A DNA stretch of 60,805 bases, filler included, from Sluysia triapertura (Eukaryota): assembly GCA_046118255.1 (NCBI GenBank). It is 4 parts of 4 records of this genome, joined end to end, with 100 filler letters (N's around TTAATTAATTAA, not from the genome) between each part and the next. Parts side by side here need not be neighbours in the genome. Positions count along the whole stretch, not along the records: positions 34,645 to 47,640 come from JBJNIA010065960.1; 3 more parts are not named here. One strand, given 5' to 3'. The translations under genes and the position numbers were made by a program. The notes below the pieces were generated by a model. That model saw only the letters and a list, made by a program, of their open reading frames with translations, was not told the origin of the DNA and did not search any database. Numbering within the stretch: position 1 is the first letter of the stretch; the number at the start of each line of letters is the position of its first letter. Below, in pieces: positions 34,645 through 47,640 of the stretch.

Positions 34645-37539
34645 TTAAATAGAACTAATTATAATTTATTAGAATTAAATTACTTAACGCCCTCCACAAC
34701 GTTGACATAAGATCGCTAATAATTATGTAACATTTTATTTAGTGTTAAATAGTAAAGAAAATGATTTCCAATTTTAAATTATTTTCCATTAATGTGGTTT
34801 AGAATTCAGAAATTGGATTAAACTCGACATTAAAATTAAATTTACACTAAGTTTCAAAAAGTAATTAAGCTTATGAAATATTTTATCAGAACCTACCCAC
34901 ATAAAGACAGAAAAAAACTAATAAATATTATTTAGAATATTAATTTCATACTAAGATTTTACTACAAAGAAACATCTAAAGTTAAGTTCTCTTATAGTTT
35001 TCAATTAATCACAAAGTAATTAGTGATTATTTTATCTTATACCATAGATATAAGTTCAAATTCAGCACCATTAAAATTCATAACGTAATTTATAATACTG
35101 TCAGGTCGTCATTTGCCATTTTGTGATCTTCATCATCTTATAATTTTTTGAATTCTTATCATATTATGATTTTATGACATTTTATGATTTGGTCAAACGA
35201 TATTTTATAATTCAATTATCTATAATAAATTTTAATCTAGATTAATATTTAAATAAATTTAAAATAATATTTGTAAATTAATAATAATAAAATTTTACAT
35301 TTCATAATTATATATGATAGATTTTAATCAATATTTACAAATTAATAAAAAAAATAATAAAATATTTGTCAGCTGTTTATCTTAGAAACTATAATTTATT
35401 ATCATATCTATGTACATTAGAAACTATTGTATTGTCATATGAAAATAGTATACAAATAAATAAAATTGTCACAAAAATTATTAATAGAATTTATCTAAAG
35501 TTATAAAAATTTTCAATTAACGACGATTTTAGTTTTCAACCAATATTGTCTGATCTGCAGAAAATTTTATAAAGTCATCAGAGAATTCTTATTCACAACG
35601 ATTTCTTTTGATCATTGTTACTTTGCTGAGGAAAATTTTAATATTGTTAAAATAAGTTATCGTCAGTTCGATTTATTTTAAGACTTGACGAAATTTAATT
35701 TTGTTGAAAAATCTACATTAAATTATAAATTAAAATTTCCATTCAATTATTTAAATTGATTGTAGTAAATTTCACTTATAAAATTGTTAAGTCTGGATTA
35801 ATAATTTTCGGTTATTAATTTCTGCAAAATCTTCTAACAGCCGTTTTATTATTTTTAATATTATTTAAAGTTTGTAAACCTTTATAAATGCTGTATACAA
35901 TTGTTTATTGTTAATATAAATTATTTACTTGATTTAGTCCTAAATAAACAAATCTTACATATGAATAATTCATATATATTTAATTTTCATTTAAAGTTTA
36001 GCATACATATTCGAATAAAATATTAACTATTTAACTCTCTAAAGCAAAAAAAGAGAAAAATAAATATTCATTCTTCCTATTTCAATTTAGCAAATCTTTC
36101 TCGTATTTTGACCTTCAGGTGGTTTAAAAACTTTAATAACTACTATAATTTTTTCCACTTTTTATTTCGTGCAATACAATAAGTACACCGAATAATACAG
36201 AAAAAATAGTATTTTAAACTTAAAATTTTATGGGTCTTTAATTATACCAATTGTAATTTCAAATGATAATTTTTCTCATGGAAAAAATTATTAAGAAAAA
36301 GATATTTAAAATATGATTTTAGAATTTTTACTCTTTCGAGCATAATCTACCTTAGAAATATTGTTTATAAAAAAACTAATAGCTTCGACAATTGAAAGAA
36401 TTAAAAAATATCTACTAAATTATAGGAATAATTATAATGATCTGCGTTCAATGTATTCGAAAAAATTGTATAAAAATAAATTCTCTCTTATTGAATAAAA
36501 AGTTTCTTTTTCCTTAATAAAATAATAATTCGTAAAAATAATAAATGGCAATTGTGATGGCCGGGTTAAATTTGGGTGTTTAAAGTATACAATCGTCTTA
36601 TCTTTAAGAACAATTCTGTTATAAATGACATTACGAAAACTGGGCTTAAGGCCCGTTCTAACTTTTAAAATTTTATTATCAGAAATGAAACTAATAAGCA
36701 TGGACTTAATAAATAATAAATAATAAACATTTAAGTTGTTAAACATTAAAAATCGGCTTAAAGCTTTTCACTTTATTCAAATCATTAAATTTAACTTTAA
36801 AGCAAAGTCAACATAAAAATCCAAGTTGAATTTAAAATGAAACTTGATCACACAGAGACTGATGAATAAAAAATGTCATTAACATATAAATGTTTAACTT
36901 TAAATTCTTGCACAAATAAAATTGTAATTCTAATTTCTGAAGTAAGAACTCTAAAAATTAAAAAAGTATAACCTATAATTTCTAAATCAACAATAATGAT
37001 ATGTCCGGTTCCACGCTGATGCATCAACAGTAGTTCGGGCACTCTCGCAACAAATTGCTTATCGCTTTTGAATTTTCATAGCCAAATGTCTAATCATTTT
37101 GCCAATGGGAAACAAGAATCGTGTAGGTTCATTTGAATACAACATTTTAAAATGACGTGTAATAGCATTGATAACATCGAAGGATTCGTGATGAGTATTT
37201 ATCTGAAGTTATTACATTGTATAGATCCGATTCTGACATTAAATCAATGTCTTCAAAATCTTCTAAATCTGCTTTATCAGTATGTCTTGAGATAGTGTCA
37301 ACATATAATCTGTAATGCTTCAATATCCATCAGAAATTTTCTTACAAATTAGCGATGTAAGTATCATAAAAATTCAGAAACAGTTGATTTGTTTGAAAAT
37401 TTTTTAAAATCGCAAATTTTTTACTTTTATGATCATTGTCTGTTTTCATACATTTTGTTTAATAAAACAAAAACGAAAACAATATAAATAATTTAAGTAA
37501 TGCAACATTTTAAGGATGTAATTATAAAATTAAATGAAA

Positions 37540-38004
37540 TTAAAAATTAAAGCTGATTTCTTTTATTATTATTTTCATTAATTTACTCCTATTCAGTATT
37601 TCAACTTCATTTTTCATCAACAGACTTGTATTTGACAGGTTTGAACCTAGATTTAATTTCGTACCAGATTTTATTAAATACTTAACATTATCGTACCTGT
37701 GCCTGTAAATTGCTAGTGAAAATGTTTCAGCTGCTTTTATACATTTTACATCTAAGTAGTGAATATTTATGTTTATATTATTCATAAAAAGATAGAGATC
37801 TGAATTAAAATCTGTATCACTATTTATTTTATCAGAATATAAAGAATATTCCAGAGATGAAACATCTTGAGCAAAATTTAAGCTATTTCTTATTAAATTA
37901 AATGTGCAATCCGTATTTTTATTAATAGATACTTCTCGTCTATTTAATATTTGTTTTGCTACACATTTTCTTTTGCGATAAATTTCAATTAATTGGTTAG
38001 GTTT
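37540..38004 (-). pseudogene. 155-codon open frame with one ankyrin-repeat-like segment (exon or gene fragment)
   Basis: The frame is open for 73 codons upstream of ATG 37785. ETFSLAIYRHRYDNVKYLIKSGTKLN resembles the ankyrin consensus TPLHLA...G..EIVKLLL..GADVN. Confidence 0.3.
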
Positions 38005-38890
38005 TTAGCATACTTTGTCTATTCTTTTTTATCTCATCTTTCGTTTCTAAATACCTTATAATAACAGCTTGACTTTCTATTCGAGAAGTAACCTTATCTT
38101 CAAAAAAACACGATGAATTGAATTATAAAATGCCTTACTATTAACATGCTCTGAAAAACGAATATAATTATCCAGTTTTTATCTATAAATGTATTATAAA
38201 CATACATTAAACATTAAACTTTTGAAAGCTTCTTGAAGGAAAAATTTCTCTAACTACACAAGGTGACGGACTTATTTCTCAGATGGTTTCGTAGTAGGCT
38301 AATAATGTTTATAAAATATTTTTCTGTCATATTCCGTCATTAAAAAGTATTAGGTAATACTATCTAAGGAAAAGATACAATAATAATACGATTTTAATGC
38401 AGATATGGGAGGCGATATCAGCTATATCACCTGATACTAGCATGATTAGTTGCCACAGTTTATATATATTTATCATTCTGTTTTAGATGTTATCGTGTGT
38501 AAAAATGTAGCGAGATTGGAATGTATATGAAATATTTGTAATTAAATTTGTTGAGAATATATGAATAACTGGGACACCACAAGAAGAAATTTTGTTATTC
38601 AATAAAAGTGATATTCACGTGAAGCTAGTATTTATAGTAGTCAATAACCAATCACACTCAATTAGAATTCTAGAATTTTCCAGAAATTTCTTTTTCTTTT
38701 TTTGAATATTTATTTTCTTTTATGAAAACTCATGAATTTTAAGGGGTTGTGACGACAAACTAACAAAATTAATTCAATTTCACAACCACTTTTTAAAAAA
38801 AGTAATCTAATACGTCACCTCAATAATCCTTTCATTCAAATTAAATAATAATAATACGGAAAATATATTATCTACAATTGGAAAAACTTC

Positions 38891-40490
38891 GCCCGAAGGC
38901 AGTACATAAATAATTATTTTCATATAAAAATTAGAGAATGATCAATCAAAAGGATTAGAATGTAAAATCACATAAAAAAGTTAATAATCAATGTAAGTTT
39001 ATATTATTGTTTTTCTTTGCAGGGTCAGAAGCAGCAGCTGGAACTGGGGCAGGAACTGTAAGTAGAACCAGATTTGGGATTGGTTGTGGAATTGTAACTG
39101 TTGTTGGAACTGGATCCAGAGCAGCAGCACTGCGGTGTAGTTTTTGGTATCGTGAAAGAATGTGATTGTTATAGATGTGGTGTGACATCTTCACCATGCC
39201 AGAAGCGATACCAACCAAAAGTTCATTAATTGCCAGTTTACTGAATTTGAAATGTTTTAGAGTATCAATATTTTCGGGGTTCATTGCGCCAAGATAGGAA
39301 ATCTTATTTTAGATTGAACAATTTTACTAAGGTGTTGAGAAAAGTATTTTAAAGAGTTTTCCTTATGTATATCAGCATACGAATCAATTTTATTAAACGG
39401 TGTTTTGATATCGATAATGCAGAAACAGTCATTGAATTTAAAAGTAAATCAGGTCGTTGCCGTTTGATATCATCTGGAACATTAGAACGACTAGAGAAAA
39501 GATTGCATTCTACATCACAATCAACATCGATATCATTATCTCTAAGAAAGGTTGTAACAGTTCGAAGAGCAAGGTTATGCCGCATTGTAATCAGACTGGA
39601 ATTAAAAGGGAAATGATTAAGAAAATGGGGGGTCAGATTCATATTTGAAGAAGCATCGCCGACAGTTGGTAGGAATATTCATATTCAGATTCTTCCCTGA
39701 AAAGTTTAGGGCTAAAGTGTTGGTTCGTGTTTTAATCAGGAAAAGAAAGTATTATCAGAAATTTCAGAGTTCATAAGCATTCCGTTGTAAGTCGGGATTG
39801 CCCAAGGGATGTAGTCAAAATAGATTGGCATTTTAGGGATTGCCATCGGAAGAAGTGTGATAATCCAGTCAGTTGATGAAACTCTTGGGTGAGATTATCT
39901 TTTTCATCTTTAATAAAAGAGAAAAAAGTAGTTTGTAAAAAAATGTTAATAGAAAACTTTGTCATCAACGAAAGCAAATAAATCTTTGATATTATGTGTG
40001 GATTTAAGTGTTTTGAAGCAATCTCTAACAATTGCTCATAAGGTTGATTTGGACGGGTACAAATCAGGATCAGTAATGCCAGAGAGCCAACTAAGAGTAA
40101 TAATGATATCAGGATTCTTGAAGTATAACTTGGAATCCATTTTTAAGTAATCAAGAGAAAAACAACGAAGGATTTTGTCGGTTGAGGTAAAAATTCGCAA
40201 ATAGTGAACAGCAGTCCTCCTAAGTCAATAATAGTATAAAAGAAATTAATAGAAGTGGATTGATAATGAATTTCAAGAGCAGGTCGTAATAGGTTTCGAA
40301 AACTTCTATCATCTTCATCATCACCAGAACGCATGCGCGCTTTTCCCCGCTGAGTTCGCTAAACTTTGCATATTCAGAATCGGTAGGGAAAACGAGATAG
40401 AATGAAAATTTTAATTGAACGGATTTTCTGAATAGGATGGAGGCGAGAGTAATCTGAAAGGGCAGTTCGAAGCATGGATTCTATTGATAA
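38891..40490 (-). mobile_element. 5'-truncated, decayed non-LTR retrotransposon with restriction-like endonuclease (R2/NeSL/Utopia-type)
   Basis: Motifs appear in order across frameshifts: RT thumb SRLHPIQKIRSIKIFI and FFYTIIDLGGL; knuckle CRRCFFKYES..HFLNH; TMRHN; RLE core RPDLL..IIDIKTPF..KY; ISYLGAMNPEN..L; SHHIYNNHI. Stop at 38988. A GCC-TTCG-GGC hairpin lies in the putative 3' UTR (38891-38900). Confidence 0.85.
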
Positions 40491-40833
40491 TTGCTTTTCT
40501 AAATAAGTTTTAAAAATTAATCCATCATTTCTTCTTCGATAAAAGCCTGATATTCACATGTGAAGATAACTAAAAACAATTAAACGCATAATAACAATTG
40601 TAAATATTGTAAATTATGTTTAAATTATGTAAGTAAATTAAAAATTATTTAAATTAAAAGTTAATTTGTAAAATTATGAAAATATAGAAAATATTAATTT
40701 TATTAAAAATTTTAGTACAAAATTTTAATTAGTAATTTATTTCATTTAATTAATAATTTAGTTATTTATGTCAGAACAGTTAATCATTTCCGAATTATTT
40801 ATGTATATGAAAAATCAGTCACTTATTCACAAT

Positions 40834-40967
40834 ATTTATTTAAAAACGGAAATTATTTATTTATAACGAAAATTCGAAATTTATAAAAATTATTTATTTA
40901 AAAAGCGGAAATTATTTATTGATGACAAAAAATTAGAAATTCATAAAATTATTTATTTAAAAAAGGA
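40834..40967. repeat. ~59-bp tandem repeat (about 2.3 copies)
   Basis: ATTTATTTAAAAA(G)CGGAAATTATTTATT..GAAATT(T/C)ATAAAA is repeated head-to-tail. Confidence 0.7.
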
Positions 40968-43900
40968 TGTTCGAAGACATGTAAATAGACTCGACTTCAA
41001 CGTAGACCGCATAATAATTGTCGGAGAATTATTTGAAAAATTTTTTATATTTTGGTTGTGAAGAAAATTATCAGTGTTACCAGAAAATCAAGATCGTCAA
41101 TTTTTGGTGTTTAACTTGGAAGATATTACCAGTTTAATAAAACGAATATTGGAATCGTCGTGGACTAAACTTTTATCTGGATATCTCTCATTATATGTCA
41201 ATGAATAAGTATGCTATTTAGTTTTAAGTTTTGGCATTACTATTTTTCCCTTAAAATCAACGAAAAATCATTTTTAAATTTTCAACACTCAAGCATTAGC
41301 CTGAGTTAAACTCTAATTTAAACTTTAATAATTATTAATTAAGGATTAATCCTAAGTTTCACACTTCTATAAATATAAATTTGTATTTGATCATTTTCTT
41401 TGTTAACTTAGAATAGATACCTTGTTTTCATACGTGATTTTATTACAAGGGAATTTATTAAAAAGAGAAAAGAAATATAAGTTAAAAGATCTTCCAAAAG
41501 TTACAGAATAAAGAATACTAAGTTAAAATTATAAAGCAATAAAAGGAAAAGTTCGATCAAAAATAATTATCGAAGAATTAATTTATTCTTAAGTAATTAA
41601 TAGGTGTTAGGATTAATTCATTTCTAGTGATTAATTGTTGATAGAATTAATTGATTAATTGTTCCATAAAATTAAGTGATCGGATAAGTTAGATTAAAAG
41701 AAAACATTGACCCTCATTATTGAGATAATTAAATTGATGCAAGATTTAAGGAATCTTTTTCGTAGTTTTTGACATTTGACATCCTGTGAATACGTCTTCA
41801 TGGGATATAAATCGTATATTGCAGGCGGACCCAGAAAATTTAATAATCTCATAATTTTTGCAGACTTAAAAAAGCTGAACACAAATCAATAATCAGAAAA
41901 ACCTTTTCCATTAAAAGTATTTTTCACGTCCGATAATTTCTTACTTTTACTAACATTGTCAATCATTTCGGTGATTGTTCGAGATAATCGTGAACTTCAA
42001 ATATCCAAGATTCTCTATTAATTCATTGGCTACATATTCCTTTTTCATCAATAAACTTTCGAAATAAGAAAAACAAAAAGATCGATAAAACAATTTCCAT
42101 AACCTATTAACCACTTATATTTCTTTTTTAATACTTTTAGTTTATTGAGATATGCTTCATTAACTTCAAAATCTTTCTTTATTGTTTTGTGTTTCCTTAA
42201 TTTCATTTAGAATTCTTTTGCTGTCGTTTTATCATTACTAATTATGCAAAAATAAATATGTTGCTAGGGTTCGCCTACGATGTAAGCCTGACGCGACGCA
42301 TCCGTAGGTTTCATAAAATTCAATTAACATTGCGAAGGTCTATAAAGATTTCAATTGTCTTACTTCTCTTAATTAAAATAAAATCTTATTCGTATTATTT
42401 AATAAAATCCTTTAAAAGTTATTCAACAATTTTTAGTCAATTTATTTCAATTCTCTCTCTAACTAATCGGTGTTTTAGACGTGATACAATGTAAACAGAT
42501 CGCTTACTTTAAATTTTAATATTTAAGTAATACTTAGTGACAATCAATACAAAATGATTTTATGTAGCTTCTGACTTTCAAATTTATAAACTGATGACTT
42601 GACGTTATAAGATAAATGATTTAATTCGTTTAATATTTTATACTCATTAATTTTACTGTTAACTAGATACACACTTTTTATTGATTGACAAAAACTTTAA
42701 TTAATGTAACAATTTCCTTTTTATTTTAAAGATAAATTAAGTATTTATTTACTTTATTTACTTTTACGAATTACTTTTTTAAAATTAAATTAACTTTAAT
42801 TATCTTAACATACTTGTATTTCAAAAATATATCAACTTTAATTATCCTTACAAACTTTTATGTTTTAATTATTTTTGAAAAGCAACTTATATTATATCAA
42901 ACAGGACTAAATAATGAACAATGTACAACATTTCTTCCGTTCCGGTACCGTACTTTCACTCAAGTTTCACAATAATATAATAAATATAATATTATTATTA
43001 TGCAAGATTTTTTACTGTGTTTGATTTATAATTTGAGTCCCCTATATCCTAAATTTATTCTAGTCCGTAGATATCAGAAAAAGTAATTTATAAATTAGTG
43101 GAAGGTTAACAAGTTCATAGTTGATGCTTCAGTACCATTATTAAGTATTTATTTTAGACTCGTTTGTAATTGATTAAATAGGTTTGAGTATATGTGGTTT
43201 CTAAAAATTCAAAACTAATAATTGATATGTTTAAGTGAGAACGAAAATTTATTAAATAAATACTGTGATAATTTTAAAAGATCCTACGCAAAATTAAGCG
43301 CAAAAAAATGTAATAATAAAAAAATAAAATTAAACTTAAGGATTTTCTCATAAATTTAAAAATAAAATTGAGCCAGGAGTTGTAAGCCTAAGTTTAACAA
43401 AGTCGTACCCTAATAAGAATTAACTTATGAATGCATGAATATTCTCATGAAATGGTTCTAAGATGACGCTCGAAAAATAATAATAATTGACAACGATTTC
43501 TGCCAGTTAAATATTAATTACACAAGGATTACTTGTTAATGAACGAGAATGATATTGAAGTACCATGAGCGAAACAACTGAATAAATTTTTTGATAGAAC
43601 TCATTTGAACCTTAAAGATTTGCTTGTGTGAAAAGATTCTACAGCGATTGCAAATGTGGGAAAAAATCATGAAGGGTTAATATTTATATTGTCCAGTTTT
43701 ATTGCTCATAAAAATATTATAAAATATTTTGTTATGTATTAATTATTTTTTACGTCAAATACAATTATAAAATAAATATGAATAAAGAACATTTAAAAAA
43801 TTTCCGCATTTATTTTTATTAATTTCTGTGTTTTCTCTTAAAACTCAACAATTATGGTTAAAAACTGTGACATGATTACAAGTAATTATCAATATGATAC

Positions 43901-46548
43901 GTAAAAAGGGTCCTTAAACAAATGCAAAATGTAACTTATTTCTATAATAACTTTAGAGTTTACGTCTTTATTCAGTTTAAAATTAACTTAAGAATAACTT
44001 TCTTAGTTCTTACAGAATTCAACTGTTAATTGAATTTCTCATTTGCTAACTTAACAAATCTGTACAATATCATCTTTAAACGTTTAGATTAATAACAAAG
44101 AAATAAACACAAATTACGTTTTATAGCTCGACACTTGTAAAAAATATATTTTTGGGTACATCATAACAAATAAATTGATCGATATGATAATGTCTTCTCT
44201 GAAAAATGAAAAATTCTCCTTATTATATTTATCTTTCGAATTCCAATTTGATCAATTCCACTAATAGTTATTCGTACCAAATATAATAGTATATATCCGA
44301 GAATAGAAACTCGCATAAAATGTACATACAAATTGTGTTGAATCTATCTTTTGAACGTTTTATTTGTACGTTTCTTAGTCTTCTTAGTAATGATCATAAA
44401 TAATAAAATTATTTTATTTTATTTTCACGATGTTCACAAAACCATATTTTACTTCCATAAAAATGTTATAATTTTTAATAAATAATGAATTTGAAAGTAA
44501 AAACGACATAAAATACATTTTTTGGTTAGATAATGAAATGATCATTAATAAAATATTTTCGGTTAGGTTATAAAATGATCATAAACTATTTACTTAAAAA
44601 ATAAATATTTGTAAAACTTAAAGACTAATGTTATTTAATACTACAGAAACATCAAAAATGTTGAAATATTTTCAAATTATTTGAACTAATTAAAATATTT
44701 ATATAGACTAATTTTCTTTTTACATTTATTTACAACTAAACTAAGTTTTCTTACAATTATTATATTTACAAATTAAAATTTCTAAATATTTACAGCTTTA
44801 AAATAATTTAAGGTAGAGTTAAAAATTATTTACAATTTCTAAATAATATATATTTCTAATTAATTTACAACTAAAAATACTTTTATTTTTTTAACGTCTT
44901 TTAAATTTATACCTTTTAAGGTGTACTAAAGTATACAGTGCACGATGTATGATTATTTAATGATTTCTAAACATATGATGGAAAACTATATTTACTGAAT
45001 TATGTTGAAATATGCTTTAATATTGTGGACTCATAAATTGTTCGAGTTTGTAGTTGGTTCGTAGGATTAGTTCGTCAGATGAATCGGATATTGTAAAGTC
45101 CGAATTTTCTTTGAATTGTGAATCTGAGGTTAATTTTTGGATTATGTTGCAATCTTGCTTTAATGTTTTATTCTTGTGAATTGTTTGAGTTCATAGGTTA
45201 TTTTTAGGATGACTTTGTATAGTGTACCGTTATTGGTGAATTGTTTAAAATTAAGATGTTTTCTTGAATGAAGCCGCAGATTTCTTGATTGTAATGATTG
45301 TGATGTATGAGTGCAGATTTATTATGTGCTGATTTTGTAATGAAATCATAAATCATGAATTAAGCCATCACGACATAGATTGCTATTAATAAACGTAAAT
45401 GAAACATCACAGCAAGAATATCTTAGTTAAGACTTAAGTAAATTGTACCAAATTATGATGCATTAATATAATTACAAATGATACAATCAAGTTGAACCTA
45501 AATCAATTTAAGGGTTCAAAGATTACAGTGACTTTAATATTAAAGTATGCAAACAATATAAATTTTAATAACATTAGTTTATGCAAAATAATTCAAGATA
45601 TTTGAATCGATTCTAACCATTTAGTAAATTTTGTTATTCATTGTACATTTGCTTTTGCTCTATTTTCTATAAAATGATTTTTCATTTCCTTTCGAGAAAG
45701 AGTATTCGTTTTCACCATTGTTGCAATCAGTTTATTTCACATTATAAATTCAAATTGTACAAGAACCATAACTTTATCCATCACAATATTAATGCTCTTC
45801 AATTAATATTAACAAAAAAGTTGAATTGATAGAATTAGTCTCTACAAAAACACATTTTCGTCCCAAACATTTATAGTCACAAAAATGAAGTAATAAATTA
45901 CAACTTACCAACTGATCTTTTACCGAGTTAACTTTACTTGTTGAGTGCAGTACCAAACTTTCGAAGTCAGTGTTCTGCTGAACTAACAAGGTTGAAATAA
46001 TTAAATAACTAATCATTAAATTCATAGAAATATCGTTTGGTTACACAAATGTATGTACAAATATTTTGCATAAATAATAAACCTTATGAGTAATAATTTA
46101 TTTGTAAACAAAAAATGTAATATAAAATTAACTATAAATAATATTAATATTACAATCAAAAACAGAAGTGTAATGTGAAGTTCAGTAATTCATTACTTCT
46201 CAAATTTAATCAATTATAAATAAAATATAAAACCATACATACAATATAAATATTTAAAATATTAATTGCACAATAATAAAATAAGTATCATGCATTGGAA
46301 AAAAATAAAATAAAATAAAACATTAGAAATGAATAAAAGCAAATATTTTATTTTTTGCAAATAAACAATTTAATGATATTATCAATAAATAATAAAATTA
46401 AATTACAAAATAATTGAATATTGATGACGATAATTTTAAATATTTGTATTTTTACAGATCCAGAAATGACTATATCGACTCAAAAGCGATAACCGAATTT
46501 TACATGTGACAATAGTACTATAAAAATAGTGTTTGCATATGAATTCAA

Positions 46549-47640
46549 TTAGATGGGTTGAGAATAATCGTTGTACGGATAGTTGATTATATTTCTTAAA
46601 TGGATAATTGACAGAATCATTCCCAATATCAACAAACAACCACATATAATTAATACTATAAGAGTTGCTGATGATTTATTCCATAGTTTATCTACAATAG
46701 CATTGAAACAACCTTGTTTATATATTGTACTTTCAACGGCATCTTTGCATTGGTTCGGATTTACAGGTTTACCATCTTCTTTTATGCAGCAAGACAGTGG
46801 AACTTTATCTGGTTTATTATTTTTATACCATAATGTATTTTGGTATGAACGGAAAGCAGAATTATCTTGATCTTTAAACGTACTAATTTCATCAACATTT
46901 TTATTGATTTTATTATTAATATCATCAAAATTATTTTCTTCATAATTTTGATTTACCTTTTTCATAGCTATCTTGCCTCTCAGATCTTTTTCTTTTATAT
47001 TTTGTTGCTGCTGTTCATCATCAACAACATATTTTTGTTCTTTATTTTCTTCTTCTTCTTCAACTGCTTCTGAACTTGGAATTAACTCTAGATCTAGAAA
47101 AGTTGTACAAATGTAGTCAGATATTTGATTGCTACTTTTTGTTTGATCTGCGTACTGACTCAATTCTTTATTTAGAATCTTCTTGAATTTACTAGAGGCC
47201 ATGTCACTGACAGATCTATGAGTCTGAATACTTTCAAGTTGTTCTAAGCACCACTCTAGCTCGTCCAATGTTTCTACCGTTAGTGTTCTTTGATTATCAT
47301 CTAAATCGATTTTTGATTCATCTAGCTTTACCGAATATCCTGATGGATTTAGCACACCAAATCTAGCATCTTTTGTACTTTGGACATTGGTAATAAAGAT
47401 AAAATTAGCACGTACATTTCTCAGACTAGCCAATATCTGCACAAACGGTGTTACAATTAAGTCCTCAGTGTGTATAGGAGCTACAGTGCTTGTTGCTATA
47501 TCATCAGACACAATTAAGGCATGTCTGGAATTTCGTGGTGAAGGACTATGATCATGTTCCAGATACCGGTACAGAAACGACTCTCGACGTTGTGGAATAT
47601 GATGAAGAACGAGTCCTGTTGATGGATTGTCTGGAATTTG
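46549..47640 (-). CDS. Chimeric ORF (5'-partial, 363 aa): PDE4/dunce UCR1+UCR2 fused to tetraspanin EC2 distal half + TM4; no PDE catalytic domain
   Basis: One stop-free frame from the contig end. It encodes GLVLHHIPQRRESFLYR..HTEDLIVTPFVQILASLRNVRANF (UCR1), then ETLDELEWCLEQLESIQTHRSVSDMASSKFKKILNKEL..NQISDYICTTFLD (UCR2), an E/Q/N-rich linker, and WYKNNKPDKVPLSCC..C..IYKQGCFNAI..LIVLIICGCLLILGMILSII (tetraspanin PxSCC, GC, TM4) before the stop. Confidence 0.8.
   Translation of the reverse strand, partial: QIPDNPSTGLVLHHIPQRRESFLYRYLEHDHSPSPRNSRHALIVSDDIATSTVAPIHTEDLIVTPFVQILASLRNVRANFIFITNVQSTKDARFGVLNPSGYSVKLDESKIDLDDNQRTLTVETLDELEWCLEQLESIQTHRSVSDMASSKFKKILNKELSQYADQTKSSNQISDYICTTFLDLELIPSSEAVEEEEENKEQKYVVDDEQQQQNIKEKDLRGKIAMKKVNQNYEENNFDDINNKINKNVDEISTFKDQDNSAFRSYQNTLWYKNNKPDKVPLSCCIKEDGKPVNPNQCKDAVESTIYKQGCFNAIVDKLWNKSSATLIVLIICGCLLILGMILSIIHLRNIINYPYNDYSQPI

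Follow-up and report, generated by a model that had tools for sequence, protein, structure and literature searches.

An open frame joining a PDE4 regulatory module to a tetraspanin 3' fragment in Sluysia triapertura

One open frame at the edge of a piece of the Sluysia triapertura assembly carries the UCR1-UCR2 regulatory module of a PDE4, an AT-rich spacer and the 3' fragment of a CD63-like tetraspanin gene. The reading that we favour, with a rough probability of 0.45, is that a PDE4 exon is normally spliced onward from 46957 and that a dead tetraspanin fragment lies just inside the intron. The PDE4 exon (UCR1, LR1, UCR2 and LR2) would end at its own 5' splice site, AAG/GTAAAT, and would be followed by 85 nt of putatively non-coding sequence and then by the tetraspanin fragment, probably broken within an exon just past the CCG motif. 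In the order of events that we envisage, a recent rearrangement, either a partial duplication or an insertion, would have set this fragment directly behind the PDE4 exon of a flatworm-like genome, and the junction would presumably exist in the organism and not in the assembly alone. The PDE4 transcripts most likely splice from 46957 to catalytic exons situated beyond the available 12 kb. The tetraspanin part would then be intronic, and the unbroken frame would be fortuitous and not a selected fusion.

The window, that is, the whole stretch of DNA analysed, comprises 60,805 nucleotides, and the frame lies in the piece at positions 34645-47640. Translation of the minus strand from 47640 to 46549 gave 363 sense codons (47640-46552) closed by a TAA, with zero disablements and with both halves in one frame. 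The translation and the Pfam matches confirmed the claim of the earlier note that an intact frame joins UCR1-UCR2 of PDE4 to half a tetraspanin, and the HMM search that it had proposed was positive for both PDE4_UCR (E 1.6e-41) and Tetraspanin (E 1.9e-8). The length of 363 codons had been counted correctly, but it is set only by the piece ending there; the frame is still open at the edge of the piece (47640), so its 5' end is missing, and in-frame Met codons were observed only at residues 147, 226 and 341. The features of the frame are listed in Table 1.

Table 1. Coordinates, in the window, of the features of the open frame.
Feature	Position	Strand	Description
Open frame	46549..47640	minus	363 sense codons and TAA (46551-46549); 5' end lies beyond the edge of the piece
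RRESF, UCR1 PKA consensus	47575..47589	minus	Residues 18-22; aligns with eight PDE4s and 4WZI
PDE4_UCR match	47092..47454	minus	Residues 63-183: runs from the end of UCR1 through LR1 and UCR2; contains the capping-helix motif NQISDYICTTFLD
LR2-like acidic linker	46957..47091	minus	Residues 184-228; recognisably PDE4-like only in its first part (ELIPS...)
Donor-like AAG/GTAAAT, phase 0	46951..46959	minus	Exon would end at 46957 (boundary 46957/46956)
AT-rich spacer, 85 nt (GT...AG)	46872..46956	minus	16.5% GC; 28 codons in frame; two AATAAA
Tetraspanin 3' fragment	46552..46875	minus	Residues 256-363: distal half of the large loop, TM4, tail and native stop
PLSCC motif	46786..46800	minus	Residues 281-285; other loop Cys at 298 and 311
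Hydrophobic span corresponding to tetraspanin TM4	46603..46668	minus	Residues 325-346; Kyte-Doolittle 19-residue mean 3.2

The GC content along the piece was 17-34%, with values of 31-37% in the coding parts and 18-25% in the downstream non-coding DNA. GC3 was 0.26 in the PDE4 half versus 0.23 in the tetraspanin half, a similarity suggesting that both halves are native to one genome. Pfam detected zero matches in ten other open frames of the piece, Rfam detected zero, and a feature search of the ESM Atlas returned no usable match. An exact 12-nt direct repeat was found in the N-terminal part of the frame (47522-47533 and 47628-47639, 106 nt apart) and is probably due to chance. Additionally, positions 38600-40650 of the window have a GC content of 0.30-0.34, versus about 0.22 in the surroundings, and contain a run of open frames of 60-123 residues, mostly on the minus strand and without any Pfam match; this region may correspond to the decayed remains of a mobile element or to a gene that escaped recognition.

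The PDE4 half was matched by Pfam PDE4_UCR (PF18100) over the full profile (1-119 of 119), with 142 bits against a cut-off of 26.9. In the PDB, residues 16-205 matched the autoinhibited long PDE4B structure 4WZI (E 3e-35), and residues 143-193 aligned with the UCR2 of 3G45 and 3G4G. Alignments to PDE4s and PDB entries showed that RRESF, the arginines of LRxVR, the acidic DELEW stretch and the Tyr-bearing capping helix are all kept, and the presence of an intact UCR1 with RRESF and of UCR2, as reported before, was borne out by this motif and by the full-length profile match. When the piece was searched by tblastn with nine full-length PDE4s, a match was obtained at 47640-47092 and nowhere else. 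After ...TFLD the frame continues into an acidic linker whose beginning is like the LR2 of other PDE4s, and a profile made from 77 PDE4 LR2-to-catalytic segments aligned the frame to about residue 230 only, leaving the D.WG.DIF catalytic start unmatched. A catalytic-domain stub in the spacer, where MAFFT had put residues 229-255 under D.WG.DIF, was discarded, since the 77-segment profile gave no alignment there. PDEase_I (PF00233), the domain with the metal-binding His/Asp motifs, was not matched by Pfam in the frame, and a catalytic domain was absent from 34645-47640 by both tblastn and a catalytic-domain HMM in every frame.

The identity of the PDE4 half to trematode and arthropod proteins was 46-58%, the best single match being the PDE4 of Schistosoma spindale (58%), and that to the PDE4 of the bdelloid rotifer Rotaria was 49%. 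In a maximum-likelihood UCR tree of 31 named animals, the sequence of the window was sister to the trematodes plus a cestode (Neodermata), with a support of 100/99, and its terminal branch (0.38, versus a median of 0.3) was ordinary. The DNA is not human; it probably comes from a flatworm, or from a near ally, that stands outside the parasitic group, and given the 49% for Rotaria against 58% for Schistosoma a bdelloid rotifer is an unlikely source. No near-identical protein was found in the public protein collections searched, which evidently do not include the gene models of this genome, and exact look-ups of the frame and of one of the tetraspanin relatives described below (P0121) had no record among public assemblies.

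The statement of the earlier note that no catalytic exons are visible in the 12 kb downstream held for the region analysed (34645-46548), but it carries little weight because the introns of relatives are long and their genes large. The PDE4 gene of the trematode Opisthorchis felineus (L018) spans 72 kb and is interrupted at the equivalent position by a 10.6-kb intron, and that of S. spindale spans 139 kb; with PDE4 genes of this size in relatives, 12 kb free of catalytic exons does not show that the gene is devoid of them, and it means little where the introns of the trematode relative examined reach 10-17 kb.

The region from UCR1 to LR2 is a single uninterrupted block of 228 codons. The same region holds at least four introns in Opisthorchis, including introns of 17, 16 and 2.6 kb, and annelid PDE4 contigs are split after ...DMATSK and after ...TFLG. 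In vertebrate PDE4 genes UCR1 is spread over three exons, LR1 occupies one and UCR2 is again divided among three (PMC2929239). The half of the proposed retrocopy check that compares introns with those of relatives found that at least four of them are missing from the UCR region. A processed copy is thus possible, and the intron-free block, by itself a small point of interest, would be explained either by a processed partial PDE4 copy or by wholesale intron loss in this lineage. Neither a poly(A) tract nor a target-site duplication was found after the 3' end of the tetraspanin part.

The donor-like site stands near a position at which trematode and annelid PDE4 genes have an intron. In O. felineus, an exon with the second half of UCR2 and LR2 is followed by the 10.6-kb intron a few residues before LDQWG. 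The 9-mer AAG/GTAAAT has a chance expectation of about 0.02 occurrences in a frame of this composition; bare GTAAAT is present at three places in the frame, including at 47192 and 46764 within clearly coding sequence. The spacer behind the site matched neither the PDE4 family, with the LR2-to-catalytic profile, nor the tetraspanin family, with its HMM, and it does not recur as a dispersed repeat in the piece, where its best local matches scored no higher than background. Its codon-usage score was ordinary (39th percentile of the open non-coding windows). Its GC content by codon position (9/2/2) is reached by only 1.6% of the open non-coding windows, and this pattern hints at coding periodicity. 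A stretch of 28 codons is open at 9-14% of the positions in the non-coding DNA of the piece; with a factor of 1/3 for the frame match, an open and in-frame spacer would arise by chance in about 3-5% of cases, and such continuity of the frame constitutes weak evidence, as it is not rare given the large scan.

The length of the spacer is 3n+1, and excising 46956-46872 shifts the frame into a stop after 29 codons, by local translation only. In-frame splicing of both parts was therefore rejected: no phase-0 AG was found downstream of the donor, and since removal of the 85 nt breaks the frame, only read-through would yield the fusion. The TTTAAAG at 46872 (phase 1) was also tried as the ancestral tetraspanin acceptor and discarded, because the intron of a related gene, on contig L002, is in phase 0 and lies before FSCCGV. 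Moreover, the two AATAAA of the spacer (46914-46909 and 46905-46900, minus strand) lie 40-55 nt past the donor-like site. If used as poly(A) signals by a read-through RNA, this pair would end the transcript ahead of the tetraspanin part; at 16% GC it is uninformative alone.

The second half of the frame was matched by Pfam Tetraspanin (PF00335) at residues 236-346 (profile 107-221 of 225; 34.7 bits against a cut-off of 32.1), and in the PDB residues 235-351 weakly matched TSPAN15 (8ESV, E 0.004). The elements previously attributed to it were present: PxSCC in the form of PLSCC, the further loop cysteines in QC and GC, one hydrophobic span as TM4, a Tyr-containing tail of 17 residues and the stop. 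The start had been placed at about 46850, and this had to be corrected, as confident homology was found instead from about residue 256-258 (46875-46866). Four of the six loop cysteines of the CC-CC-C-C pattern of tetraspanins (PMC2650405) are kept. The CCG motif and TM1-3, described as missing, were absent from the whole piece by tblastn and by the family HMM in six frames; measured against the four TM segments of a tetraspanin, a single hydrophobic span was found, and no TM1-3 coding sequence in the piece. The cysteines of CCG normally form disulfides with two of the four loop cysteines that remain in the fragment.

Three relatives of this half, P0121 (257 aa, UniParc), P0260 (SRA-derived contig) and P0207 (soil metatranscriptome contig), are 43-46% identical to it. 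In all three the matching region starts directly after CCGV, and no Cys was found in the frame before residue 284 at the site that holds this motif. Their tail (...LRNIIN.Y..YSQPI) is almost identical to that of the frame, and the stop coincides in position. Of the 48 columns invariant across the three, 34 are retained in the fragment, and this, together with four of six cysteines kept, suggests that it belonged to a working tetraspanin until recently. In the related gene on the genomic contig L002, phase-0 introns were observed after TM1, TM2 and TM3 and before FSCCGV; by comparison, the fragment starts 5-6 codons inside the equivalent exon, not at an exon edge, and has zero introns in 108 codons, versus four in the first 147 codons of L002. 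Ancestral tetraspanin introns are in phase 0 (PMC2650405).

Several other proposals on this half were tried and abandoned. Homology reaching back through the spacer, as the equal NY-to-WY spacing and the Pfam envelope from residue 236 had suggested, was rejected because the HMM aligned residues 234-262 at low posterior and with zero identities; upstream of about residue 262 the family HMM gave low-posterior alignment only. An ancient tetraspanin intron right after CCG did not agree with L002, where the intron is in phase 0 and before FSCCGV. Terminal inverted repeats around the tetraspanin part (I1, I2, I9 and I23) reached a local score of 16 versus a background maximum of 15, which corresponds to chance. 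No further significant tetraspanin or PDE4 pieces were found in the 13 kb by tblastn and HMMs. At 38605-38573 (minus strand), 8 kb downstream, 8 of 11 residues match ...LLQNKFSCCGV of P0121, the segment that is exactly what is missing before the tetraspanin fragment; this match is at chance level (tblastn E 1.2, HMM E 4.3).

Some observations were also made on the public sequences used. The ENA metagenome contig L002 (99-1424) contains the 5' half of the related tetraspanin, with introns of 54, 48 and about 780 nt and the one before FSCCGV, and the public gene call on it (P0261) runs straight through both short introns. The soil metatranscriptome contig L001 (100-720) has a 1-nt frame break just before ...SCCGV, and the protein derived from it, P0207, extends past the native stop as though TGA were read as sense.

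The architecture itself was searched for in public data. A word-indexed search of 5.8 billion proteins detected no protein with UCR and tetraspanin, and returned only PDE4s with UCR alone or with UCR plus the catalytic domain. A full HMMER search of 1.84 billion representatives, in which a fusion would have outscored everything else, found no protein matching both parts. A metagenome scan gave 14 loci, all of them UCR2 exons only and none joined to a tetraspanin. The earlier note had not known this architecture from any described protein, and indeed no public protein in the two protein searches shares it; neither a second copy nor conservation of the fusion was found. The ordinary UCR branch and the 34 of 48 tetraspanin columns kept together point to a young junction, and all the evidence agrees that it would be a lineage-specific join of two intact-looking gene fragments of one genome.

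Splicing out at the donor, with the tetraspanin fragment in the intron, agrees with PDE4 homology that stops within LR2, with a donor at the end of LR2 where Opisthorchis likewise has an intron, with a spacer as poor in GC as the downstream non-coding sequence, and with a fragment that begins inside an exon and without CCG. Nevertheless, a random insertion within an intron exceeding 12 kb would seldom fall as close as 85 nt to the exon, share its strand and leave the frame matched and open; the periodicity of the spacer and the bare GTAAAT within coding sequence also speak against it, and the missing introns (at least four) fit a processed copy better than a resident PDE4 gene. Such a copy would be chimeric, either a processed pseudogene or a very young retrocopy, in which template switching, or the insertion of one copy into the other, linked the 5' part of a spliced PDE4 mRNA to the 3' part of a spliced tetraspanin mRNA, with the true genes elsewhere. 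We consider this joint reading to be on the unlikely side. It would account for the uninterrupted block of 228 codons where Opisthorchis, annelids and vertebrates (PMC2929239) have introns, for a tetraspanin part that starts at an arbitrary point within an exon and is intron-free when set against L002, and for the lack of catalytic exons behind it by tblastn and HMM. However, a spliced message would reach the catalytic domain, while the PDE4 homology breaks off at a strong donor-like site that lies close to an ancestral exon boundary; the 85-nt filler is unlike either message, the marks of retroposition looked for after the 3' end (poly(A) tract and target-site duplication) were not found, and intron loss in this lineage would explain the block as well. 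A misjoin of the assembly, in which AT-rich sequence of low complexity some 700-750 bp from the end of the piece would have linked two unrelated loci of one genome, a PDE4 exon with the start of its intron and the end of a tetraspanin gene, appears clearly unlikely. The junction does lie in sequence of 16.5% GC at about 0.7 kb from that end, both sides look like intact working genes up to it, and the 5' half of the tetraspanin and the 3' half of the PDE4 are both absent from the piece; yet the spacer gave only background-level local matches in the piece and is no dispersed repeat there, a cut inside a tetraspanin exon would be unexpected unless the exon boundary differs in this species, and the openness in frame needs the same 3-5% luck.

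The earlier note had proposed a membrane-anchored, PKA-switchable PDE4 decoy. A real expressed fusion, in which read-through of a weakly used donor would produce a UCR1-UCR2 module tethered to membranes by one helix at its C terminus, as tail-anchored proteins are, is improbable. Such a protein might associate with long PDE4 by way of the UCR1/UCR2 helix bundle, or cap and uncap catalytic sites in trans under the control of PKA. In its favour can be counted the 363 codons without disablement and with the halves in a common frame, the retention of all the motifs for UCR function (RRESF, LRxVR, DELEW and the capping helix with its Tyr), the geometry of one strong TM followed by 17 residues, the GC periodicity of the spacer, and the precedent for regulation in trans given by UCR1C, a UCR1-derived peptide that is reported to activate long PDE4 forms (PMC6613170). 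These points are opposed by the absence of any like architecture from the 1.84 billion representatives, the 5.8 billion clustered proteins and the metagenome contigs, by a chance probability of about 3-5% for an open spacer picked from a very large scan, by a strong donor-like site in the middle of the frame, and by a start codon and a promoter that are not in view. Long PDE4 forms dimerise through the UCR1/UCR2 helix bundle, with UCR2 cross-capping the pocket of the partner, and this dimerisation also needs an interface between the catalytic units (PMC6613170; PMC4371794). Action of the UCR module in trans is thus conceivable. The decoy obtained no positive support, as there is no conservation and no second copy and the fragment is cut inside an exon; the alternatives raised in the same note, splicing away at AAG/GTAAAT and a join or misjoin near the end of the piece, fit at least as well.

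The topology of such a protein would also differ from that of a tetraspanin. The TM ends 17 residues before the C terminus, no other hydrophobic window is present in the frame, and the N terminus is off the piece. A lone TM4 after an N-terminal part of 320 residues without another hydrophobic span would insert in the orientation opposite to that in tetraspanins; with a single C-terminal TM and no signal sequence, the loop would sit the wrong way round. Since the loop half would face the cytosol and lack its CCG disulfide partners, it could serve only as an anchor and not as a tetraspanin. A newly born gene of the flatworm lineage, with UCR1-UCR2 tail-anchored by a recycled tetraspanin TM4 and without hydrolase, which would dock on or titrate long PDE4 in a PKA-sensitive way, is decidedly improbable.

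If expressed, the frame would provide the first natural case of a PDE4 regulatory module that is separate from its enzyme and membrane-anchored, a ready test of the regulation of PDE4 in trans by UCR1/UCR2, and an example of gene birth by the joining of fragments; if the decoy were true, it would sit on membranes and regulate the local breakdown of cAMP in trans. As the evidence stands, the frame is more useful as a caution that a young junction or an assembly join can yield two seemingly intact domain fragments in one open frame.

Compared with known systems, the frame shares with long-form PDE4 (Drosophila dunce, C. elegans pde-4, the trematode proteins and human PDE4A-D) the complete UCR1-LR1-UCR2 and the start of LR2, but it is without the catalytic domain and without the introns (at least four) of relatives, and has a tetraspanin fragment appended. 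With CD63-like tetraspanins (CC-CC-C-C) it shares PxSCC, the C and GC cysteines, TM4, the tail and the position of the stop, whereas TM1-3, the small loop, the constant helices and CCG are lacking. The 'dead-short' PDE4A7 is reportedly a catalytically silent product derived from PDE4 and not fused to a foreign domain. Drosophila jingwei is an example of a young chimeric gene, of the kind formed by partial duplication, exon shuffling or retroposition. Young chimeric genes of this type and the stretch described here have in common two unrelated parents, intact-looking fragments, a junction at or near exon edges, restriction to one lineage and an architecture that no relatives share. The UCR1C peptide is, like the frame, derived from PDE4 and without hydrolase activity, and could act on long forms through UCR (PMC6613170). 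UCR1C is a short UCR1-related peptide with neither a membrane anchor nor a foreign domain, whereas the frame of the window carries both UCR1 and UCR2 together with a putative anchor.
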